Shown here: piece by piece, positions 3,001 through 53,099 of the stretch
Layout: each line of letters starts with the position of its first letter
Position numbering within the stretch: the stretch's first letter is position 1
Source of the DNA: Macrostomum lignano
Lineage: Eukaryota
Assembly (NCBI GenBank): GCA_002269645.1
Contig: NIVC01000017.1
Location: 186,001-250,000, forward strand
DNA length: 64,000 nt
Direction: 5' to 3'
Notes under the pieces: generated by a model
What the model saw: only the letters and a program-made list of their open reading frames with translations
The model's database searches: none
Told to the model about the DNA's origin: nothing
Translations under genes and position numbers: made by a program

Positions 3001-4986
3001 GGGCAGGCGAGTTCTTGTTGAAGAAGTTGAAGACGAAGATGACGATGAAGAAGAAGCTGGACAAGACGCTGCGGATGTGGCCGTTGTTCGCGAGGTTGAT
3101 GGAGTTGTGACCGAGTCGAGGCTGACTGCCGCTGGTGCGCGGGAGGCGACACCCGAAATAAGTACAACAGCTACCGATAAAAGTACAGTAGACTCCAATA
3201 ATAGTACTCTTGTTGCCGATGTATCTGCTGCTGAAAAAAGTACACCCGAGTCGAATAAAAGTACACCGGCTGCTGATAATAGTGCAGCCGTACTTGCTAA
3301 AAGTACAAACGAAACTACTACAACATCGGCTGCTATCAAAAGTACAGCAGAGTCAAATAAAAGTGCACCAGTTGCCGACAAAAGTACTACCGAACCTGTA
3401 AAAAGTACATCGGCTACTAAGACAAGCGTATCGTCCACCGACAAAACGACCGTCGCGTCACCGCGTTTGCAATTTCCGGAGCCAGTCGGCGACAAGCCTT
3501 CGGCCTCTGTTCGCCCAGACTGCAGCCCGTTCGAGTTCACTCAGGCCTGGCTGTCCGCAGCTCGGTCTTCTTCTCCTAGCCAGCCGGCCTCGGCAATTCA
3601 CGCCGACATGCTGACCGCCATCGAGTGCAGCCGTCTGCCGCGTTTGCTGTCTAATAAGCTGGACGGCCTCATGCTGGCGCAGATTGTGGCCGCCGTCAGG
3701 GACCGCCTGGCCGAGCGAGACGCTCGCGCCGGCGCCAACGTGCTGCTCAGCCTGCCCGGCGCTGAACGATTCGACTTTGTCGTCATGTTCCTGGATGCCA
3801 AGGAGAAGGCCGGTCAGTGGCTTGGGCTTTGTGCTGATTGTCTGCGCTTCTGGTTTGTCTCTGATCAGCTTGATTGTGTCTGTTGATCAGCTTGATTGTG
3901 TCTGTTGATCAGCTTGATTGTGTCTGTTGATCAGCTTGATTGTGTCTGTTGATCAGCTTGATTGTGTCTGTTGATCAGCTTGATTGTGTCTGTTGATCAG
4001 CTTGATTGTGTCTGTTGATCAGCTTGATTGTGTCTGTTGATCAGCTTGATTGTGTCTGTTGATCAGCTTGATTTTGTCTGTTGATCAGCTTAATTGTGTC
4101 TGTTGATCAGCTTGATTGTGTCTGTTGATCAGCTTGATTTTGTCTGTTGATCAGCTTGATTGTGTCTGTTGATCAGCTTGATTGTGTCTGTTGATCAGCT
4201 TGATTGTATCTGTTGTTGATCAGCTTGATTGTGTCTGTTGATCAGCTTGATTGTGTCTGTTGTTGATCAGCTTGATTGTGTCTGTTGTTCAGCTTGATTG
4301 TGTCTGTTGTTCAGCTTGATTGTGTCTGTTGTTCAGCTTGATTGTGTCTGTTGTTCATCAGCTTGATTGTGTCTGTTGTTCAGCTTGATTGTGTCTGTTG
4401 TTCAGCTTGATTGTGTCTGTTGTTCAGCTTGATTGTGTCTGTTATTGATCAGCTTGATTGTGTCTGTTGTTCATCAGCTTGATTGTGTCTGTTGTTCAGC
4501 TTGATTGTGTCTGTTGTTCAGCTTGATTGTGTCTGTTATTGATCAGCTTGATTGTGTCTGTTGTTGATCAGCTTGATTGTGTCTGTTGTTGATCAGCTTG
4601 ATTGTGTCTGTTGTTGATCAGCTTGATTGTGTCTGTTGATCAGCTTGATTGTGTCTGTTGATCAGCTTGATTTTGTCTGTTGATCAGCTTGATTTTGTCT
4701 GTTGATCAGCTTAATTGTGTCTGTTGATCAGCTTGATTGTGTCTGTTGATCAGCTTAATTGTGTCTGTTGATCAGCTTGATTGTGTCTGTTGATCAGCTT
4801 GATTGTGTCTGTTGATCAGCTTGATTGTGTCTGTTGTTCAGCTTGATTGTGTCTGTTGATCAGCTTGATAATCTTTATTAATCCAATGTATTTTCAGATT
4901 TGTCGGCCACAGCCGCTAAGCTGGAGTCGCTGGGCGCCCTCAGCCCAGACGAGATGCGCGCGTTGAAAACGGCCTACAAACTGTGA
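3..4986 (+). CDS. SPAG1: Sperm-associated antigen 1 (TPR co-chaperone / axonemal dynein assembly factor with RPAP3-type C-terminal domain), 5'-partial
   Basis: Exons <3-359, 1601-1847, 2005-3812 (frame discontinuity near 2400-2500) and 4898-4986 (TGA), joined by phase-compatible GT-AG introns. Motifs match remembered vertebrate SPAG1 in order: AEWASIAADLNAW, DLLPPVRAAN, PRSYDEWSKL, GLSNEERARLAEQEKAKGNEAFRSGDYEEAALYYSRS...AYNNRA, a second TPR block AKEAGNQLFKAGNY, and C-terminal PFEFTQAW...LLSNKLDG...AERFDFVVMFL. Confidence 0.9.
400..1530. repeat. 44-46 bp minisatellite in the first visible SPAG1 intron (360-1600)
   Basis: Tandem TTTCACAAGCTCGAAGCTTCAGATCCCCATAAG(GG)CCTTCAATTCC; 46-bp period measured between 401 and 447. 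Confidence 0.95.
3860..4870. repeat. 22/25 bp minisatellite in the last SPAG1 intron
   Basis: Tandem GATCAGCTTGATTGTGTCTGTT, with variants carrying an extra GTT. Confidence 0.95.
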
Positions 4987-5379
4987 TGCAGCTCGGATGC
5001 TGTTTGGAGCTCAATTTTTCCCTTTTTTCTACACGATGTTGCACTGAACTTTTTCTGCTGGTTTTGTGTCTCATCATTTATTAATAATTTCTCTTCAAGC
5101 TACTTTGAGTAGTGTAGACGCGTTTCTTGCTTCTTAAATTTGTGAATTTCTTATATTCTTTTCCGTCCACAAGGTTATGGTGGTGAAAAAATAGCGGTTT
5201 TATAATGCCTCACTAATTCCTGCATACAAGTTTACTGGATATGTGTAACGCTGTGCTACGTTTTTTGATACAATTCAATTTGTTGGTATTCTGATTTTTT
5301 CGTTTATTTTTTCAATAGTTTTAGTTAGAAGTTTAATAGTTTTTAGTAGAGATAAGTGCGCGCTCGTATAGTTACGATC

Positions 5380-7370
5380 TTGTTCAGTCTGTAGGTGAGA
5401 TTTTGATCAGTCTGTAGGTGAGATTTTGATCAGTCTGTAGGTGAGATTTTGATCAGTCTGTAGGTGAGATTTATGATCAGTCTGTAGGTGAGATTTTGAT
5501 CAGTCTGTAGGTGAGATCTTGATCAGTCTGTAGGTGAGATTTATGATCAGTCTGTAGGTAAGATTTTGATTAGTCTGCAAGTGAGATTTTGATCAATCTG
5601 TAGGTGAGATTTTGATCAGTCTGTAGGTGAGATTTTGATCAGTCTGTAGGTGAGATTTTGATCAGTCTGTAGGTGAGATTTTGATCAGTCTGTAGGTGAG
5701 ATTTATGATCAGTCTGTAGGTGAGATTTTGATCAGTCTGTAGGTGAGATCTTGATCAGTCTGTAGGTGAGATTTATGATCAGTCTGTAGGTAAGATTTTG
5801 ATTAGTCTGCAAGTGAGATTTTGATCAATCTGTAGGTGAGATTTTGATCAGTCTGTAGGTGAGATTTTGATCAGTCTGTAGGTGAGATTTTGATCAGTCT
5901 GTAGGTGAGATTTTGATCAGTCTGTAGGTGAGATTTATGATCAATCTGTAGGTGAGATTATGATCAGTCTGTAGGTGAGATTTTGATCAGTCTGTAGGTG
6001 AGATTTTGATCAGTCTGTAGGTGAGATTTTGATCAGTCTGTAGGTGAGATTTATGATCAGTCTGTAGGTGAGATTTTGATCAGTCTGTAGGTGAGATCTT
6101 GATCAGTCTGTAGGTGAGATTTATGATCAGTCTGTAGGTAAGATTTTGATTAGTCTGCAAGTGAGATTTTGATCAATCTGTAGGTGAGATTTTGATCAGT
6201 CTGTAGGTGAGATTTTGATCAGTCTGTAGGTGAGATTTTGATCAGTCTGTAGGTGAGATTTTGATCAGTCTGCAAGTGAGATTTTGATCAATCTGTAGGT
6301 GAGATTTTGATCAGTCTGTAGGTGAGATTTTGATCAGTCTGTAGGTGAGATTTTGATCAGTCTGTAGGTGAGATTTATGATCAGTCTGTAGGTGAAGATT
6401 TATGATCAGTCTGTAGGTGAGATTTTGATCAGTCTGTAGGTGAGGTTTTGATCAGTCTGTAGCTGTAGGTGGGGTTTTGATCAATCTGTAGGTGAGATTT
6501 TGATCAGTAGGTGAGATTTTAATCAGTAGATGAGATTTTAATCAGTAAGTGAGATCTTGATCAGTCTGCAGGTGAGATTTTGATCAGTCTGTAGGTGAGA
6601 TTTTAATTAGTCTGTAGGTGAGGTTTTGATCAGTCTGTAGCTGTAGGTGGGGTTTTGATCAGTCTGTAGGTGTAGGTGAGATTTTGATCATTCTGTAGGT
6701 GAGATTTTAATTAGTCTGTAGGTGAGGTTTATGATCAGTCTGTAGGTGAGATTTATGATCAGTATGTAGGTGAGGTTTTGATCAGTCTGTAGCTGTAGGT
6801 GGGGTTTTGATCAATCTGTAGGTGAGATTTTGATCAGTAGGTGAGATTTTAATCAGTAGGTGAGATTTTAATCAGTAGGTGAGATCTTGATCAGTCTGTG
6901 GGTGAGATTTTTATCAGCAGGTTAGACTTTGCTCAGTCTGTAGTTGTAGGTGAAATCTTGATCAGTCTGTGGGTGAGATTTTGATCAGTAGGTGAGATTT
7001 TGCTCAGTCTGTAGGTGTAGGTGAAATCTTGATCAGTCTGTGGGTGAGATTTTGATAAGTAGGTGAGATTTTGCTCAGTCTGTAGGTGTAGGTGAAATCT
7101 TGATCAGTCTGTGGGTGAGATTTTGATCAGTAGGTGAGATTTTGCTCAGTCTGTAGGTGTAGGTGAAATCTTGATCAGTCTGTGGGTGAGATTTTGATCA
7201 GTAGGTGAGATTTATCAGTAGGTAAGATTTTGATCAGTAGATGAGATTTAGATCAGTAAGTGAGATTTTGATCAGTAGGTGAGATTTTTATCAGTAGGTG
7301 AGATTTTTATTAGTAATTGAGATCTTGATCAGTCAGTAGGTGAGGTTACGATCAGTCTGCAGGTGAGAAT
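5380..7370. repeat. 23 bp minisatellite between SPAG1 and CCT7
   Basis: Tandem GATCAGTCTGTAGGTGAGATTTT, degenerating into shorter units towards 7370. Confidence 0.95.
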
Positions 7371-7584
7371 TTGAGCAGCATATGGACGAGTGTCGCTGAT
7401 GCCTGCATTTCGAGTTCAGAGTCGATTTTCAGTTAGTGCCATAGACGAAACGGCAGTTCGTATTATATCCCAAGCACCATAGTAACTCCATCTCTGCTCT
7501 ATTTTCTTACTGCATGCAAAAGCAAGCAAGTAAATTTCAACTGCAAAACCGGAACTCAATAGTTAACAGCTTATTATCATCATC

Positions 7585-10500
7585 ATGACTCAGCAAATCC
7601 AGCCCAGAATCATCCTGCTGAAGGAGGGCACCGACTCCTCGCAGGGCCTGCCGCAGATCATCTCCAACATCAACGCCTGCCAGGCCATAGCCGAGGCCGT
7701 GCGCACCACCCTGGGGCCCCGCGGCATGGACAAACTGATCATCGACGACCGCAAGAAGGCCACCATCTCCAACGATGGCGCCACCATCTTGAAGCTGCTC
7801 AACGTTGTACACCCGGCCGCTAGAATCCTGGTTGACATCGCCAAATCGCAGGATGCTCAAGTTGGCGACGGTACAACCAGCGTAGTGATTCTGGCCTGCG
7901 AGTTCCTTCGCCAGATGAAGCCGTTCCTAGAGGAGGGCGTCCACCCCAGGGTGGTGATCCACGCCCTGCGCAGGGGCACCCAGCTGGCTCTGGACCGGCT
8001 GGATGAGATCGCCGTTAAGATCGCTAAGGACGATCCTGCGTGAGTCTGAACTCCCACTACTAAAAATCACGAACCCACAACTGAGAATCCCAATCCCACA
8101 ACTGAGAATCCCAATCCCACAACTGAGAATTCCAATCCCACAACTGAGAATCCCAATCCCACAACTGAGAATCCCAATCCCACAAATAAAAATTCCAATC
8201 CCACAACTGAGAATCCCAATCCCACAACTGAAAATTCCAATCCCACAACTGAGAGTCCCAATCCCACAACTGAGAGTCCCAATCCCACAACTAAAAATTC
8301 CAATCCCACAACTGAGAATCCCAATCCCACAACTGAAAATTCCAATCCCACAACTGAGAGTCCCAATCCCACAACTGAGAATTCCAATCCCACAACTGAG
8401 AATCCCAATCCCACAACTAAAAATTCTAATCCCACAACTGAGAATCCCAATCCCACAACTGAGAGTCCCAATCCCACAACTAAAAATTCTAATCCCACAA
8501 CTGAGAATCCCAATCCCACAACTGAGAGTCCCAATCCCACAACTGAGAGTCCCAATCCCACAACTGAGAATTCCAATCCCACAACTGAGAATCCCAATCC
8601 CACAACTGAGAATCCCAATCCCACAACTGAGAATCCAATCCCACAACTGAGAATTCCAATCCCACAACTGAGAATCCCAATCCCACAACTGAGAATCCCA
8701 ATCCCACAACTGAGAATTCCAATCCCACAACTGAGAATCCCAATCCCACAACTGAGAATTCCAATCCCAGAACTGAGAATCCCAATCCCACAACTGAGAA
8801 TTCCAATCTCACAACTGAGAATCCCAATCCCAGAACTGAGAATCCCAATCCCACAACTGAGAATTCCAATCTCACAACTGAGAATCCCAATCCCAGAACT
8901 GAGAATCCCAATCCCACAACTGAAAATTCCAATCCCACAACTGAGAGTCCCAATCCCACAACTGAGAATCCCAATCCCACAACTGAGAATCCCAATCTCA
9001 CAACTAAAAATTCTAATCCCACAACTGAGAATCCCAATCCCACAACTGAGAGTCCCAATCCCACAACTAAAAATTCTAATCCCACAACTGAGAATCCCAA
9101 TCCCACAACTGAGAATCCCAATCCCACAACTGAGAGTCCCAATCCCACAACTGAGAATCCCAATCCCACAACTGAGAATCCCAATCCCACAACTGAGAAT
9201 CCCAATCCCACAACTGAGAATTCCAATCCCAGAACTGAGAATCCCAATCCCACAACTGAGAATCCCAATCCCACAACTGAGAATTCCAATCCCACAACTG
9301 AGAATTCCAATCCCACAACTGAGAATCCCAATCCCACAACTGAGAATTCCAATCCCAGAACTGAGAATCCCAATCCCACAACTGAGAATTCCAATCTCAC
9401 AACTGAGAATCCCAATCCCAGAACTGAGAATCCCAATCCCACAACTGAGAATTCCAATCTCACAACTGAGAATCCCAATCCCAGAACTGAGAATCCCAAT
9501 CCCACAACTGAAAATTCCAATCCCACAACTGAGAGTCCCAATCCCACAACTGAGAATCCCAATCCCACAACTGAGAATCCCAATCTCACAACTAAAAATT
9601 CTAATCCCACAACTGAGAATCCCAATCCCACAACTGAGAGTCCCAATCCCACAACTAAAAATTCTAATCCCACAACTGAGAATCCCAATCCCACAACTGA
9701 GAGTCCCAATCCCACAACTGAGAATTCCAATCCCACAACTGAGAATCCCAATCCCACAACTGAGAATCCCAATCCCACAACTGAGAATCCCAATCCCACA
9801 ACTGAGAATTCCAATCCCACAACTGAGAATCCCAATCCCACAACTGAGAATCCCAATCCCACAACTGAGAATTCCAATCCCACAACTGAGAATTCCAATC
9901 CCACAACTGAGAATTCCAAATCCACAACTGAGAATTCCAATCCCACAACTGAGAATTCCAATCCCACAACTGAGAATTCCAATCCCACAACTGAGAATTC
10001 CAATCCCAGAACTGAGAATCCCAATCCCACAACTGAGAATTCCAATCTCACAACTGAGAATCCCAATCCCAGAACTGAGAATCCCAATCCCACAACTGAG
10101 AATTCCAATCTCACAACTGAGAATTCCAATCCCACAACTGAGAATTCCAATCCCACAACTGAGAATTCCAATCCCAGAACTGAGAATCCCAATCCCACAA
10201 CTGAGAATCCCAATCCCACAACTGAGAATCCCAATCCCACAACTGAGAATCCCAATCCCACAACTGAGAATTCCAATCCCAGAACTGAGAATCCCAATCC
10301 CACAACTGAGAATCCCAATCCCACAACTGAGAATTCCAATCCCACAACTGAGAATTCCAATCCCACAACTGAGAATCCCAATCCCACAACTGAGAATTCC
10401 AATCCCACAACTGAGAATCCCAATCCCACAACTGAGAATTCCAATCTCACAACTGAGAATCCCAATCCCAGAACTGAGAATCCCAATCCCACAACTGAGA

Positions 10501-12817
10501 ATTCCAATCTCACAACTGAGAATCCCAATCCCAGAACTGAGAATCCCAATCCCACAACTGAAAATTCCAATCCCACAACTGAGAGTCCCAATCCCACAAC
10601 TGAGAATCCCAATCCCACAACTGAGAATCCCAATCTCACAACTAAAAATTCTAATCCCACAACTGAGAATCCCAATCCCACAACTGAGAGTCCCAATCCC
10701 ACAACTAAAAATTCTAATCCCACAACTGAGAATCCCAATCCCACAACTGAGAGTCCCAATCCCACAACTGAGAATTCCAATCCCACAACTGAGAATCCCA
10801 ATCCCACAACTGAGAATCCCAATCCCACAACTGAGAATCCCAATCCCACAACTGAGAATTCCAATCCCACAACTGAGAATCCCAATCCCACAACTGAGAA
10901 TCCCAATCCCACAACTGAGAATTCCAATCCCACAACTGAGAATTCCAATCCCACAACTGAGAATTCCAATCCCAGAACTGAGAATCCCAATCCCACAACT
11001 GAGAATCCCAATCCCACAACTGAGAATCCCAATCCCACAACTGAGAATTCCAATCCCACAACTGAGAATTCCAATCCCACAACTGAGAATCCCAATCCCA
11101 CAACTGAGAATTCCAATCTCACAACTAAAAATTCCGATCCCACAAGTAAGAATCCAAATCCCACAACTAAAAATCCCAATCCCACAACTCAGAATCCTAA
11201 TCCCATAACTCAGAATTCCAAATCCCACTACAGCCAGGTCCGCAGCCTGCTGGAGAAGTGCGCGACCACTGCCCTGAACTCCAAGCTGGTGGCCCACCAG
11301 AAGGAGTTCTTCAGCAAGCTGGTGGTAGACGCTGTGATGCTGCTTGACGAGCTGCTGCCACTTGACATGATCGGCATCAAGAAGGTTGCCGGCGGTGCCC
11401 TGGAGGACACCCGACTGGTGTCGGGCGTCGCCTTCAAGAAGACGTTCAGCTACGCCGGCTTCGAGATGCAGCCAAAGAAATATGCCAACCCGAAGATTGC
11501 CCTGCTCAACATTGAACTCGAGCTGCGAGCCGAGCGCGAAAATGCCGAAGTTCGAGTTAAGAGCGTCGAAGAGTACCAGAAGGTGAGTTTGCTTCACTCG
11601 CATGTACTTTTATCTGTTTCTAAGGTCCTGGGTTCGATTCTCAATGTGACCAAATTTAATTTTTTATATAACTAACTTTCTATGTTCTACATAGTAGTTT
11701 AGTTAACTGATACGAGGAAGTATTCTTATTGTGGAGATCTCTGAATGGAGCATTTTCTATATACTGGGTTGATTACCGATATGTGTCAAAAAGAACTAAA
11801 AACCGACAAAGCGGGGACCACAGATACAATGATAAAGAATAAAGTGGCCAGGTGAATTGGTTTATAATTTCTCAATAAATGACGTGAAGAGGAGTGCCAT
11901 ATCTATATAATTTATTAAAACTAGTCCCTATACCGACATGTTTAGAAGACACTTTATAAATACTTTCGCAGGTGGTGGACACCGAGTGGAACATACTATA
12001 CGACAAGCTGGTCACGCTGCACAAAGCCGGAGTGAAAATTGTGCTATCCAAGCTGCCTATTGGCGACGTGGCCACCCAGTGGTGCGCCGACCGCGACATG
12101 TTCTGCGCCGGCCGCGTGCCCGAGGAGGACCTCCGCCGGACTCAGAAGGCCTGCGGTGGCCGCATCCACACCACCGTTGTTGGCCTGACCGACGCCACGC
12201 TGGGCACCTGCGAACTATTCGAAGAGGTACAGATCGGTGCCGACAGGTACAACCTGTTCACCGGGTGTCCCCGAGCTCGAACCTGCACTATTGTGCTCCG
12301 CGGCGGTGCCGAACAGTTCATGGAGGAGACCGAGCGATCCCTGCACGACGCCATCATGATTGTGCGCCGGGCCAGGAAAAACGACTCGGTGGTGGCCGGC
12401 GGCGGCGCCATCGACATGGAGCTGAGCTACCACCTGCGCCAGCACTCGCGCAATGTCACCAGCAAGCAGCAGCTGCTGATTGGCGCCATGGCCAAGGCAT
12501 TCGAGCTCATTCCCCGCCAGCTGTGCGACAACGCCGGCTTCGACGCCACCTTCGTGCTCAACAAGCTGCGCAACCGGCACGCCAACGGCGACCTGTGGGC
12601 CGGCGTCGACATCCAGCGCGAGGACGTTGCCGACAATTTCACCGCCTGCGTGTGGGAGCCGGCCCTGGTGAAGGCCAATGCCATTGTGGCCGCCTCCGAG
12701 GCCGCCTGCAGCATGCTCAGCGTTGACGAGACTGTGAAGAATCCGGCCAGCTCCAGCACCCTGCCCAATGAGAACAAGCCGGTGAAGCCGGGCCGCGGCA
12801 TGGGCCGACCGTGCTAG
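7585..12817 (+). CDS. CCT7: T-complex protein 1 subunit eta (CCT/TRiC chaperonin)
   Basis: Exons 7585-8039, 11234-11582 and 11972-12817 with phase-compatible GT-AG introns. Chaperonin motifs [64 protein letters not shown] and an eta-type GRG tail. Confidence 0.97.
8075..11230. repeat. 21 bp minisatellite filling CCT7 intron 1
   Basis: About 150 copies of AACTGAGAATCCCAATCCCAC and variants. Source of the 1178-aa and 898-aa artefact ORFs. Confidence 0.97.
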
Positions 12818-15997: not shown

Positions 15998-41369
<25,372 letters not shown>

Positions 41370-47417: not shown

Positions 47418-50407
47418 TCACTTAGGCGTGATCTTTGTCAGGCCAGTTTCCGATCCAGTCATGGACTGCAGCATCGCCGGCAGTCGCTCCATGATGTCCA
47501 TGACTTCCCCTGTGATCTTGGCCGCTCCCAGCTCCGCGTTGCGACCGCCGCTGCTCACCATGGTGATCTTCGTGGCGCTGGCCAGCGGCTGCGCCACCTC
47601 GGCCGCGAGCTTCGGCAGCGCCTTGAGCACCAGGTCGAGTCGGGCGGCCTCGCCGTACTCTTTCCATGCATCCGCCTTCTTCGCCATCTGCTCGGCTGTC
47701 GCCTTCGCCCTGGCTTCGATGGCGAAGGCCTCGGCTTCGCCTTTGAGCTGGACGGTCTCGGCGTCGGCCTGAGCCTCCAGGATGATCTTGGAGTTCTCCG
47801 CCTCGGCGATTCGCTCCAGCCGGTAGCGCTCCGCCTCCGCCGGCTTGCGGACGCTGGCGTCCAGCTGACGCTCCCGACGCACAATCTCCAGCTCCTGGAC
47901 GCTGATCTGCTGGGTCCGCTCCACCACTTTGATCTGCATCTCCTCCTCCTTGATCAGCTGGCGAGTTTTGGCCGCCTGCAGCTCGTAGGCCAAGTCCGAC
48001 TCGGCCTTCTTGGCCTGCACTTCCTTGTCGAAGGCGGCCTTCTTGAGCTCGAAGTCGCGCTGCGCCTTGGCGATTTGCACCTCATTCTCGTATCGGGACG
48101 CCATGCGAGTCTGCACGGCGATGGCCTCCTTGATGCCGGACTCCTTCTGAGCCTCAGCCTCGCCGATTCGGGCGTCTCGCTTAACCTGCGCTGTGCGAGC
48201 CAAGCCCAGCGCCTTCAGGTAGCCCTCGTCATCGTTGATGTCCTTCAGGGTGTAGGAGGGGGGGGGCGCAGAATGGCACAGTGATTGGCGTGTCTGACCA
48301 CCGCGCAAATAGGAAGTACAGTGTGTTCTCCCAAACGGATTGGGAAGATTATTGCAAAATTCATTGCGCGAACTGGGTTTCTACCAGCGGCGTCGCCACC
48401 GGGGGACCGGGGGGGGGGCGTCCGCCAGTAAAAGCTAGGGGGGGGGCATACCAATGTTTTATCCCCCCGCCCCACCTTTTGACTCGTTATGTAAATTAAA
48501 TAACTTTGCTTCAGGACGCCAAAATGAGTGTCTGTGGCGCCAAAATGAGTGTCTGCGGCGCCAAAATGAGTGTCTGCGGCGCCTAAATGAGTGTCTGCGG
48601 CGCCAAAATGAGTGTCTGTGGCGCCAAAATGAGTTTTTGCGGCGCCAAAATGAGTGTCTGCAGCGCCAAAATGAGTGTCTGCGGCGCCAAAATGAGTGTC
48701 TGCGGCGCCAAAATGAGTGTCTGCGGCGCCAAAATGATTGTTTTTGGTGCCAAAATGAGTGTCCGCGTCGCCAAAATGAGTGTCTGCGGCGCCAAAATGA
48801 GTGTCTGCGGCGCCAAAATGAGTTTTTGCGGCGCCAAAATGAGTGTCTGCGGCGCCAAAATGAGTTTTTGCGGCGCCAAAATGAGTGTCTGCGGCGCCAA
48901 AATGAGTGTCTGCGGCGCCAAAATGAGTTTTTGCGGCGCCAAAATGAGTGTCTGCGGCGCCAAAATGAGTTTTTGCGGCGCCAAAATGAGTGTCTGCGGC
49001 GCCAAAATGATTGTTTTTGGTGCCAAAATGAGTGTCCGCGTCGCCAAAATGAGTGTCTGCGGCGCCTAAATGAGTGTCTGCGGCGCCTAAATGAGTGTCT
49101 GCGGCGCCTAAATGAGTGTCTGTGGCGCCAAAATGAGTTTTTGCGGCGCCAAAATGGGTGTCTGCAGCGCCAAAATGAGTGTCTGCGGCGCCAAAATGAG
49201 TTTTTGCGGCGCCAAAATGAGTGTCTGCGGCGCCTAAATGAGTGTCTGCGGCGCCAAAATGAGCGTCTGCGGCGCCAAAATGAGTGTCTCCGGCGCCAAA
49301 ATGAGTGTCTGCGGCGCCAAAATGAGTTTTTGCGGCGCCAAAATGAGCGTCTCTGGCGCCAAAATGAGTGTCTGCGGCGCCAAAATGAGTGTCTGCAGCA
49401 CTAAAATGAGTTTTTGCGACGCCAAAATGAGCGTCTCCGGCGCCAAAATGAGTGTCTGCGGCGCCAAAATGAGCGTCTGCGGCGCCAAAATGAGAGCTAA
49501 TATCACCGATTCCCAAAATACTGCAGGAATCGAGTGATGTAGAATTCTTGGCTTTGCCCTCCCACCATAAAATCCATGGCCAACACAAACCCCTGATATC
49601 TACCACAGACAAAATTTTGCTAGAAAAAGTACATTAAAGAGATGGGAAGAATCGGTGCTTTTGCTCCAATTTCCATAGAACGAGAGAACGCTACCTCCTG
49701 ATGCATTCAACGCCACATTCATCTGGCGCTCAGGAGGGTCAACCCTTCAAGACTAAGAATGAACTGTACATGCCGGATGATAAAAAAGCTCCATTGCAAA
49801 CTGATTCAGTCACTCACCTTCAGGGTGTAGGACACCACGCTGATGCCCATGTTCACCAGGTCGGATGAGGCCACTTCAAATACGGCTTTGCTGAACTTCT
49901 TTCTGTCTTTATAGATCTCTTCGACCGTCATGTTGCCCATGATTGCCCGCTGGTGAGCTTCCAGCGTCTCCTTCGCAATCTCCTGGATTTGTTGCTCAGA
50001 TTTTGATAGAAACTGTTCGCAAGCGGCAGCCAGCATGTCTCTGTTTTGACCTTTGATGCGCAGCTGGGCCACCCCGGTGACAGTGATGGGCACTCCCAGC
50101 TGGGTGTAAATCCTGGGCGACTCAATGGTGATGGTCATGGTGTTGAGCATGATCCTCTGCACCTGCTGGATGACCGGGAACACGAATTTGCGCCCGCCAG
50201 GGATGAAAGTTGGCGTAGTATGAAAGCATCCTAGCGACGGTTGTGAAGGGAAGGGATGTAATGTACTCTTCACCAGTGTCTAATTTCATATTGCTCTTAG
50301 TAAACGAACCTCCATACACGTAGAATGATTTCAGTCAGAATTGTTGATGTTTTACCTGAAATGACGAGTGCCTCATTCGGACCGCAGGTATGAAAACCGA
50401 ACACCAT
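47418..50407 (-). CDS. FLOT1: Flotillin-1 (SPFH domain plus flotillin coiled coil), 429 aa
   Basis: Exons 50407-50356, 50230-49818 and 48242-47418 (52+413+825 nt, in frame). [60 protein letters not shown]-rich coil [26 protein letters not shown]. Confidence 0.96.
48505..49500. repeat. 21 bp GGCGCC-core minisatellite in FLOT1 intron 2
   Basis: Tandem GGCGCCAAAATGAGTGTCTGC. Confidence 0.96.
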
Positions 50408-52111: not shown

Positions 52112-53099
52112 TCAGCTGAGCCGGAGACGCGCCTCTCCCAGTGCTTTCAGGTAGCCATCCTCATCGCTGACTTCTTCTAGCCTGTAGGACAACACGGAAA
52201 TGCCAATTCGTTCGAGATCTGCCGAGGCGGCATTGAAGAAGGCTGTGCAGAATTTTCTTCTATCCATGTAGATTTCGTCAATTGACATTTGCCTAATGAT
52301 AGCGCTTTGCTGGGCCTCCAATTTCTCTTTGACGATTGCTTCAATCTCGTGTTCTTTCTTGCCTAAAAAATTGTCGAAAGCCACTGCCAGCATGTCTTGA
52401 TTCCAGCCATTTATTCGAACTTCTGATAGGCCGGTTACAGAAATAGTTACACCCTGCTTGGCATAAATTCTTGGCGATTCAACTGTGATTTTCATTACGT
52501 TCAGAGGCATCCGTTGGACTTTATGTATGCCAGGAATCGTACATTTCCATCCATTGGTAACGAACACCGGTGATTGATAACAGCAACCTGTAGGAAAGCA
52601 TTGAGTTGATGAAATAAATTCGTCAGCATATATCTGATAGAATAATGCACATGTACATGGTAAAAGTATCAATACAGTACGCTCGTATATATAATTTTTC
52701 AAAGAAATGTCAACTTTGAATGCAATATAAATAGCGCTCGAATAGGCGTGATCTGAGCTACATTTTTCTTTAGATGAAAAAAGTAATACTCTAAAAGCAA
52801 TAGATATTTAATTAATTGCATTTTTTCTGCAGAGTAGTTATCTCTGTAAGACTGTAGTGACTCAAGCCTCGCACGTCACGAATCATTGATTAGATTATCT
52901 TAGATCTCTGTTTCACAGTTTCTTCGCCTGTTTGTTTCTTTTGGTATGTTAAAGTGTTGAGGATAAAAACTATATATCCGAGTATAAGTAACTAATGTAC
53001 GAGTTTTAATTTGTTCTGAGTTTAGGACGTCGGTTTTAATTTCTTGCCTGTGATAATTAGAGCTTCGTTGGGCTTGCACGTTGTGCATCCGAAAACCAT
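52112..53099 (-). CDS. Divergent flotillin paralogue, SPFH domain only (175 aa), GC-AG intron
   Basis: Exon 1 53099-53048 (MVFGCTTCKPNEALIITG; 52 nt, same as FLOT1 exon 1). Donor CAG|GCAAGA; acceptor TTTCCTACAG| before 52587. Exon 2 is open to TGA 52112 and aligns along FLOT1 (KVQRMPLNVMKITVESPRIYAKQGVTISVTG...DEDGYLKALGEAR). Confidence 0.8.

Follow-up and report, generated by a model that had tools for sequence, protein, structure and literature searches.

Intron 2 of the flotillin-1 gene FLOT1-A in the flatworm Macrostomum lignano is very probably a young, lineage-specific spliceosomal intron that arose when DNA was inserted into a continuous exon. The gene was analyzed within a 64 kb window of contig NIVC01000017.1 (GCA_002269645.1); the window, identical to our locus L003, is the whole stretch of DNA under study, and FLOT1 (group A) lies on its minus strand with three coding exons and two introns. 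The FLOT1-A locus adds a new and clean animal case to a class of mechanism that is already known. Few intron gains in animals have been well resolved, and introners, the families of similar introns discussed below, have been studied mostly in protists, algae, and fungi. At this locus every step is readable, from the empty site in a paralogue and the intact duplication to the donor, which opens the insert, and the acceptor, which derives from the duplicated exon end.

A direct repeat at the borders of FLOT1-A intron 2

A reading of this DNA made from sequence alone (hereafter the sequence-only reading) had described a perfect 15-bp duplication, the last bases of exon 2 recurring at the 3' end of intron 2, and this was borne out. 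The window contains two copies of the minus-strand 15-mer TCCTACACCCTGAAG and no more, one at 49832-49818 and the other at 48257-48243, and the identity runs one base further, to a coding-strand G at 49817 and 48242, giving a perfect direct repeat of 15 or 16 nt. The exonic copy is followed by GTGAGT, while the downstream copy is preceded by C9 and followed by GACATC, in agreement with the 1575-bp intron that had been proposed, with its GTGAGT donor, an AG from the duplicate, and a poly-C run ahead of it. On the gene strand the 3' end of the insert reads ...CTGCG and then C9 (opposite-strand end ...AGTCACTCAC), and the C9 run together with the pyrimidine-rich duplicate probably acts as the polypyrimidine tract. 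The nearest AG upstream of the acceptor lies at -53, with none in between, and the AG of the duplicate is therefore the first downstream of any plausible branch point. The junction supports a donor GT supplied by the insert, or by the last duplicated G joined to the T of the insert. With the three splice-consensus bases (AG/G, the slash here and below marking a splice junction or intron position) set aside, 13 free matching bases remain at one fixed offset, for which the chance probability is ~1.5e-8.

Excision of 49817-48243 leaves an uninterrupted 429-aa flotillin-1, as anticipated by the suggestion that the insert brings a GT, borrows its AG from the duplication, and splices out cleanly; splicing is scarless because the acceptor sits exactly at the end of the duplicate. 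The conceptual product is 100% identical to GenBank PAA59581.1/PAA94048.1 (our P0121) and 98-100% identical to M. lignano flotillin-1 models, and it matches flotillin-1 of many animals at 68-73% identity over 97-100% of its length. Its closest matches carry PF01145 and PF15975 (SPFH/Band 7 plus Flot domains), which identifies it as flotillin-1. Since the GenBank models with the identical spliced product stem from an annotation built by RNA-seq-guided transcript assembly (PMC5730564), the K/D junction has indirect transcript support. Retention of intron 2 would introduce an in-frame TGA after three codons (GTG AGT GAC TGA).

Two annotation-free scans were made for direct repeats permitting GT..AG excision, one of the window at a threshold of at least 11 nt, and one of the window together with L001 (a locus of the second flotillin-1 described below) at a threshold of at least 8 nt, with an open reading frame (ORF) required to span the junction. 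In these sequences the FLOT1 pair was the sole repeat outside tandem arrays that measured at least 11 nt, had a consensus donor, and was flanked on either side by real coding sequence. The remaining matches fell within tandem arrays or were 8-10 nt long with poor donors and meaningless ORFs. These scans, along the lines that the sequence-only reading had advised, recovered in the window and L001 the FLOT1 pair and no other convincing case.

The pre-insertion form of the site can be seen in related genes. A second M. lignano flotillin-1 (group B; P0002, loci L001 and L002), 84% identical to group A, has introns after codon 17 (phase 1), at E136/V137, and at Q271/E272, the exon for residues 136-271 being unbroken. 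Its homologous site, GTGGTG TCCTACACGCTGAAG GACATC, is an empty target with one synonymous difference, and the gene is uninterrupted across TCCTACACGCTGAAGGACATC; the empty form of the FLOT1-A target itself would be TCCTACACCCTGAAGGACATC. The adjacent paralogue cited in the sequence-only reading is indeed continuous at the equivalent of K/D, through SYRLEEVSDEDGY, and has intron 1 in common with FLOT1; it proved to be a truncated N-terminal copy and not a full gene, and the annotation of the homeologous loci L004 and L005 treats it as a Band_7 gene of its own. The position and phase of intron 1 are matched in Nematostella, Ridgeia, the group-B paralogue, and this tandem fragment. No intron at K/D was present in any of the three outgroup gene structures used, those of Schistosoma (L006), the annelid Ridgeia (L008), and Nematostella (L007), where a shared intron would have spoken against a recent gain. 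Intron 2 is thus missing from group B, the tandem fragment, and three outgroups at an otherwise continuous exon, which supports a lineage-specific and recent origin by insertion with target-site duplication.

The following course of events would account for the present structure. The exon strands would have been cut 15-16 nt apart at ...GTGGTG^TCCTACACCCTGAAG^GACATC..., a MAG/R proto-splice site, at least ~0.6 kb of partly repeat-derived DNA would have been joined into the cut, and fill-in of the overhangs would have duplicated the 15-16 nt. As the insert started with GTGAGT, the old exon end would have met a consensus 5' splice site, and with the C run and the pyrimidine-rich duplicate at the other end of the insert, the last AG of the duplicate would have become the 3' splice site. 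Splicing would then remove the insert and one copy of the duplication, restoring the original frame without a scar. We regard the stagger, insertion, and fill-in steps, the donor from the insert, and the acceptor from the duplicate as established.

Table 1. Positions of FLOT1-A, its second intron, and repeats used for comparison (window coordinates unless a locus is named).
Feature	Position	Strand	Details
FLOT1 coding exon 1	50356..50407	-	ATG to first base of codon 18; from sequence and translation; product P0121
FLOT1 intron 1	50231..50355	-	125 nt, phase 1, ancestral position
FLOT1 coding exon 2	49818..50230	-	3' end ...GTGGTG TCCTACACCCTGAAG
FLOT1 intron 2 (very probable gain)	48243..49817	-	1575 nt, phase 0, K155/D156 boundary; insert plus downstream duplication copy
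FLOT1 coding exon 3	47418..48242	-	D156 to stop; TGA at 47420-47418
Target-site duplication, exonic copy	49817..49832	-	49818-49832 = exon 2 end; 16th base, G 49817, = first base of intron; conserved in L004, L005
Target-site duplication, downstream copy	48242..48257	-	48243-48257 = intron end, gives acceptor AG; 16th base, 48242, = first base of exon 3
5' splice site GTGAGT	49812..49817	-	first six bases of insert
C9 run	48258..48266	-	3' end of insert; C8-C9 in other locus copies
3' unique part of insert	48267..48516	-	two further G/C homopolymer runs and G-run/C-run hairpin motif
X-core segment in insert	49727..49788	-	~60 nt, insert positions ~30-91; nhmmer E=2.6e-5, 18.3 bits
21-bp minisatellite CTCATTTTGGCGCCGCAGACA in intron 2	48517..49494	-	46.6 copies here; 39.6 and 13.6 in other locus copies
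Truncated tandem FLOT1 paralogue	52112..53099	-	~175 aa, N-terminal SPFH/Band 7 part only, 53% identical
X, fuller copy (comparison; outside FLOT1)	20101..20517	+	profile search
X copy in group-B intron 1	L001 15565-16008	+	profile search
X copy in group-B intron 3	L001 19383-19784	- (antisense)	profile search
27-bp minisatellite CTCAGTTTTGGCGCCACACAACAGGCA (comparison)	19461..19877	+	CTCA(G)TTTTGGCGCC core as in intron array

Content and possible origin of the insert

The insert now measures 1560 nt and is partly repeat-derived, with a variable 21-bp minisatellite and unique flanks of 323 and 259 nt. Copies of it were sought in M. lignano sequence comprising the window and L001-L005 (~190 kb, ~0.02% of the genome) using blastn at word sizes 9 and 7, fuzzy matching of four 22-24-mers, and nhmmer profiles. 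A weak nhmmer match of the 5' flank in group-B intron 3 first revealed an unclassified dispersed repeat, here called X, of ~300-440 nt, whose copies are ~70% alike and match neither Rfam nor tRNA. The X core in the insert scored 18.3 bits, whereas 3000 dinucleotide shuffles of the flank gave 4.6 bits at best. The insert includes X positions ~257-315 alone; the ~250 nt upstream that other copies possess are missing, and the rest of the insert beyond the core could not be aligned to other X copies. The three independent copies and one fragment found in ~95 kb of nonredundant sequence suggest a high-copy family; X makes up ~1.4% (a rough estimate) of the M. lignano sequence analyzed. In the 3' flank, a 45-nt G-run/C-run hairpin motif recurs at window 19045-19090.

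Family X also occupies introns of the group-B paralogue. Group-B intron 3 (L001 19415-20033; L002 15929-16423) consists almost wholly of antisense X and an (AGAC)n microsatellite, and its donor GTGAGG falls within the X homology. It lies at VQ/ELEI, 6 nt from a Nematostella intron (VQEQ/EI), with none there in Schistosoma or Ridgeia. When a duplication flanking group-B intron 3 was looked for, only GCAG/G was found in common, which is not significant. Intron 3 could represent a second gain associated with a transposon, or X may have colonized an intron that was already old; group-B intron 1, whose position is ancestral, also contains an X copy, and intron 3 may simply be a further case of transposon colonization.

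The GGCGCC minisatellite that the sequence-only reading had reported in the intron is present (48517-49494, 46.6 copies of 21 bp). Among 33 arrays, the best match of its unit was the array at 19461-19877, with a score of 21, where none of 2000 shuffled units scored above 17, and two more arrays at 21485-23267 carry the GGCGCC core. This kinship argues that at least the seed of the FLOT1-A array was probably part of the inserted DNA. The statement that the insert has since acquired the minisatellite is accordingly one we would not repeat, the unit being related to other GGCGCC-core arrays of the window, so that the array or its seed may have come with the insert. Nor did we find support for the link drawn between intron birth and satellite-filled introns. 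Group-B intron 2, at an ancestral position, is almost entirely a 23-bp minisatellite (47.7 copies in L001, 8.7 in L002), and because old and new introns are both filled, minisatellites do not mark intron birth. In M. lignano, where simple and tandem repeats constitute 15% of the genome (PMC5730564), minisatellite content is unusable as a marker of young introns.

As to the source of the break and the insert, our rough apportionment places a retroposition-like origin foremost, at somewhat less than an even chance; break repair with captured DNA is possible, some other route would be unlikely, and a DNA transposon is distinctly improbable. A retroelement-type endonuclease with target-primed reverse transcription of a repeat-containing RNA would fit somewhat better than end-joining capture, and is preferred because the stagger is 15-16 nt long, because the insert appears truncated at its 5' side when set beside fuller X copies, and because a search of it for terminal inverted repeats found none. 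Non-long-terminal-repeat (non-LTR) retroelements and endonuclease-initiated retroposition generate duplications of variable length, in the 7-20 bp range. Like such retroposons (long and short interspersed elements, LINE and SINE, or retrocopies), the FLOT1 insert combines a duplication of this length with apparent 5' truncation, no inverted repeats, and 1-nt microhomology at the junction, the last of which also fits retroposition. It differs from them in its C9 run, which stands where an A-rich, poly-A, or microsatellite tail would be expected, and in that neither a reverse transcriptase nor a tRNA- or 5S-like head was found in it, nor any other copy with the same 3' end in the window or L001-L005.

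Several observations weigh against a young intron made in this way. The 3' end is a C run rather than a poly-A or microsatellite tail, and this run and the mosaic content do not clearly fit retroposition; unrelated repeat pieces seem to make up the insert as a mosaic, a composition that captured genomic filler would also explain. No reverse transcriptase, tRNA, tRNA-like or 5S-like head, or Rfam family was recognized in it. The window and L001-L005 yielded no second copy of its unique flanks or termini, only homeologous copies, and the search for other insertions, as the sequence-only reading had recommended for its nonsatellite parts, found none in this sequence. A chimeric query of the flank ORFs had no protein-level matches. 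Among the three locus copies of the DV1 assembly there is no intron-less allele and hence no presence/absence polymorphism, and the pre-insertion state is reconstructed from paralogues and distant outgroups. A 462-aa ORF running through the minisatellite gave only spurious repeat-to-repeat protein matches, none over the flanks, and exact-word scans of viral and prokaryotic genome collections found no match, a result of little weight.

Alternatively, and at rather less than even odds, end joining at a staggered double-strand break captured stray repeat-rich genomic DNA with no transposition machinery, as proposed for Daphnia neointrons. Neointrons of Daphnia pulex are attributed to repair of double-strand breaks with staggered ends, and bases from the end of the neighboring exon recur at the far end of the intron; the repeats are 4-12 bp and the alleles polymorphic in populations (PMC4202315). 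FLOT1-A intron 2 is likewise an apparently recent intron of an animal, with an insert of unclear origin and an exon-end repeat at its far end. The mosaic of X core, unknown sequence, minisatellite, and G/C-run hairpin, lacking transposon hallmarks, and the failure to find another copy of the insert in the window or L001-L005 accord with captured filler. However, the repeat of 15-16 bp is longer than those of Daphnia and would require two nicks 15 nt apart, the insert contains recognizable dispersed-repeat sequence, and no empty allele occurs in the assembly. With X at only ~1.4% of the sequence analyzed (again an estimate), a random 0.6 kb fragment would rarely bear it. A random fragment beginning exactly with GTGAGT is also improbable, although selection for precise splicing would filter for such fragments.

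The sequence-only reading had invoked the introner mechanism; introner elements are reportedly the subject of Huff 2016. Judged by its sequence, FLOT1-A intron 2 does appear introner-like in design, with a perfect 15/16-nt repeat whose final AG is the acceptor and an insert that bears its own splice signals at its termini, GTGAGT at the start and C9 at the end; in the ~190 kb searched, however, it was the single such locus, and no family of similar introns was found. Introner insertion makes a target-site duplication, the 5' GT coming from the insert and the 3' AG from the duplication, with scarless excision (PMC11282704). Introners have been reported from Micromonas, Aureococcus, dinoflagellates, Oikopleura, and others (Gozashti 2022 PMC9860276; Mob DNA review PMC11282704). 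By definition they come in families of many similar introns; their duplications mostly measure 3-9 bp, and inverted repeats often form their ends (PMC9860276; PMC11282704). The FLOT1 insert shares with them the duplication, the donor within the insert, the acceptor from the duplication, and scarless removal, but differs in its single locus, its 15-16 bp duplication, and its lack of inverted repeats. By way of transposon hallmarks, nothing was found beyond the 60 nt inside it that match X, itself an unclassified repeat.

It is unlikely, on the balance of this evidence, that the insert is one copy of a specialized introner family, a non-autonomous element that would bring along both a 5' splice site and a pyrimidine tract, borrow its AG from the duplication, and have made many introns in Macrostomum genes. 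The exact GTGAGT start and the C run beside the duplication are as described for introners (PMC11282704), a dispersed repeat core lies within the insert, and group-B intron 3 could be cited as a relative, being antisense X with (AGAC)n, a GTGAGG donor in X homology, and a position 6 nt off the Nematostella intron. Yet no second copy with matching termini was found in ~190 kb, neither the window nor L001 held another splice-compatible duplication, and the X-like part of the insert amounts to only ~60 nt. X is sense in the insert and antisense in the paralogue's intron 3, which speaks against a common design, and a further X copy lies within group-B intron 1, at an ancestral position. A supplementary table of Gozashti 2022 (PMC9860276) has a Macrostomum_lignano row of 1 0 0 0, which we read, from the rows of other species, as aquatic with no introners detected. 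The introner label was therefore not retained.

Tunicate introns derived from miniature inverted-repeat transposable elements (MITEs), known from Oikopleura and Fritillaria, have inverted repeats and often noncanonical splice sites (PMC11282704). FLOT1-A resembles them as a case from an animal lineage with heavy intron loss and lineage-specific new introns from mobile DNA; intron 2 differs in being GT-AG and in having no inverted repeats.

A more speculative proposal, to which we give little credence, is that sequences bearing X, the GGCGCC minisatellite, or both are still mobile and intron-creating in Macrostomum, and that intron 2 of group A and intron 3 of group B were both born from them. 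The former would then represent a sense, truncated X with an intact 15-16 bp duplication, and the latter an antisense X supplying the GTGAGG donor. If true, flatworms would have their first known family of elements that generate introns, one that the published survey overlooked, and its mechanism would probably be of retroelement type with long duplications. The two unique flanks of the insert are ready probes for whether M. lignano, a transgenic model flatworm, has an active intron-making element.

Age of the intron and copies of the locus

The origin of intron 2 by insertion can be bracketed in time. Synonymous divergence (dS) between groups A and B is about 0.96, and because an intronic 13-mer under little constraint would have accumulated changes across such a distance, the gain is placed after the A/B split and toward the recent end of the interval. 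The intron is present in each of the three locus copies of the assembly, and the insertion is therefore older than their divergence, with dS among the three group-A coding sequences at 0.010-0.017. We infer that the 84%-identical paralogue had already split off when the insertion took place, and that the three near-identical locus copies had yet to diverge. The description of an intron gain caught in the act goes too far, as no empty allele was seen among these three copies.

The surrounding gene has otherwise lost introns. All three outgroups have a phase-0 intron at E161/G162, 18 nt downstream of K/D, which is absent in both Macrostomum paralogues and is an ancestral intron lost in Macrostomum. 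Intron 1 and group-B intron 2 (E136/V137) are at positions common to Nematostella. Counted against the 13 introns of Nematostella (11 in Ridgeia), group A retains 1 ancestral intron and group B 2-3, and by this comparison the Macrostomum FLOT1 genes have lost most of about a dozen ancestral introns, FLOT1-A having kept one and gained one. A gain in a conserved gene that has been stripped of nearly all its ancestral introns makes a good teaching case.

These losses, and the presence of an ancestral intron only 18 nt away, could be taken to mean that intron 2 is old, either predating the A/B duplication or being the E161/G162 intron after a slide of 18 nt, with precise loss from the paralogues. 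This is very unlikely. An unconstrained intronic 13-mer would not remain identical across the A-B dS of 0.96, and both group B and the tandem fragment are without introns at either site. Sliding of the E/G intron was rejected outright, for it cannot make a duplicate of exon sequence and so cannot yield a perfect 15/16-nt copy of the exon at the intron end.

Misassembly can be dismissed almost entirely: the DV1 assembly is highly repetitive, and redundant owing to extra large chromosomes (PMC5730564), which might raise the suspicion that the duplication and insert are artefacts of repeat-rich PacBio assembly, but the RNA-seq-based gene models span intron 2, and the intron, its ends, and the 15-mer at both ends are present on three separate contigs (NIVC01000017, ...2249, ...3285) that differ in substitutions and array lengths. 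The unique flanks of the insert differ by 2-3% in substitutions among the three copies. Intron 2 is 1575, 1428, and 883 nt long in them because the 21-bp array has 46.6, 39.6, and 13.6 copies. At a 90% protein cluster level the three contigs encode two 429-aa proteins.

Neighboring repeats and genes in the window

The window contains ~30 minisatellite arrays, mostly with 20-24 bp periods (e.g., 3862-4869, 5376-7378, 8052-11228, 28498-30716, and 40547-41147), and a 151-copy 21-mer array lies between exons of a CCT/TCP-1 chaperonin gene (exons ~7567-8040 and 11960-12814, +). A common T-rich/GGCGCC core, in the variants TTTTGGCGCC, TTGTGGCGCC, or GAGGCGCC, was seen in four arrays, at 19461-19877, 21485-21575, 21561-23267, and 48517-49494 (periods 27, 21, 23, and 21 bp), three of them within 4 kb of one another. 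These four arrays suggest that related minisatellites are spreading as a family. We considered whether the insert and window 19-23.5 kb have in common one colinear composite of X, spacer, GGCGCC array, 3' flank, and homopolymer, and found this unsupported: the matches are short and weak (z ~4, 26-30 nt), their orientations disagree, and a G run faces the C run of the insert. Eleven G or C homopolymer runs of 8-12 nt occur in the 64 kb, at positions including 19183, 20179, 32717, 38929, 43883, 48258, 48409, and 48438; three of the eleven are inside the FLOT1 insert. The run at 38929-38937 has a 15-nt exact match (CCCCCCCCCTAGC..) with the insert.

A Pfam scan of ORFs at 15-41 kb, made to place the window copy of X in a gene, recognized only the CCT chaperonin at 11960-12814. 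One ORF at ~25022-25140 (-) resembles a fibronectin type III (FN3) exon. An FN3/ANOS1-like gene starting near 41369 (-) may extend across satellite-filled introns for more than 16 kb, and the repeat cluster at 19-23 kb could lie within it.

Beside FLOT1-A, intron 1 of the truncated tandem fragment appears to be GC-AG (CAG/GCAAGA), and L004 has the identical sequence. An older M. lignano model (P0001, UniProt A0A1I8GKQ6; window 52127-47418) joins exon 2 of this truncated paralogue (...LGEAR) to FLOT1 exon 2, a fusion that would require a weak donor, C/GTCTCC, at ~52126 and could be either a read-through transcript or a prediction artefact.

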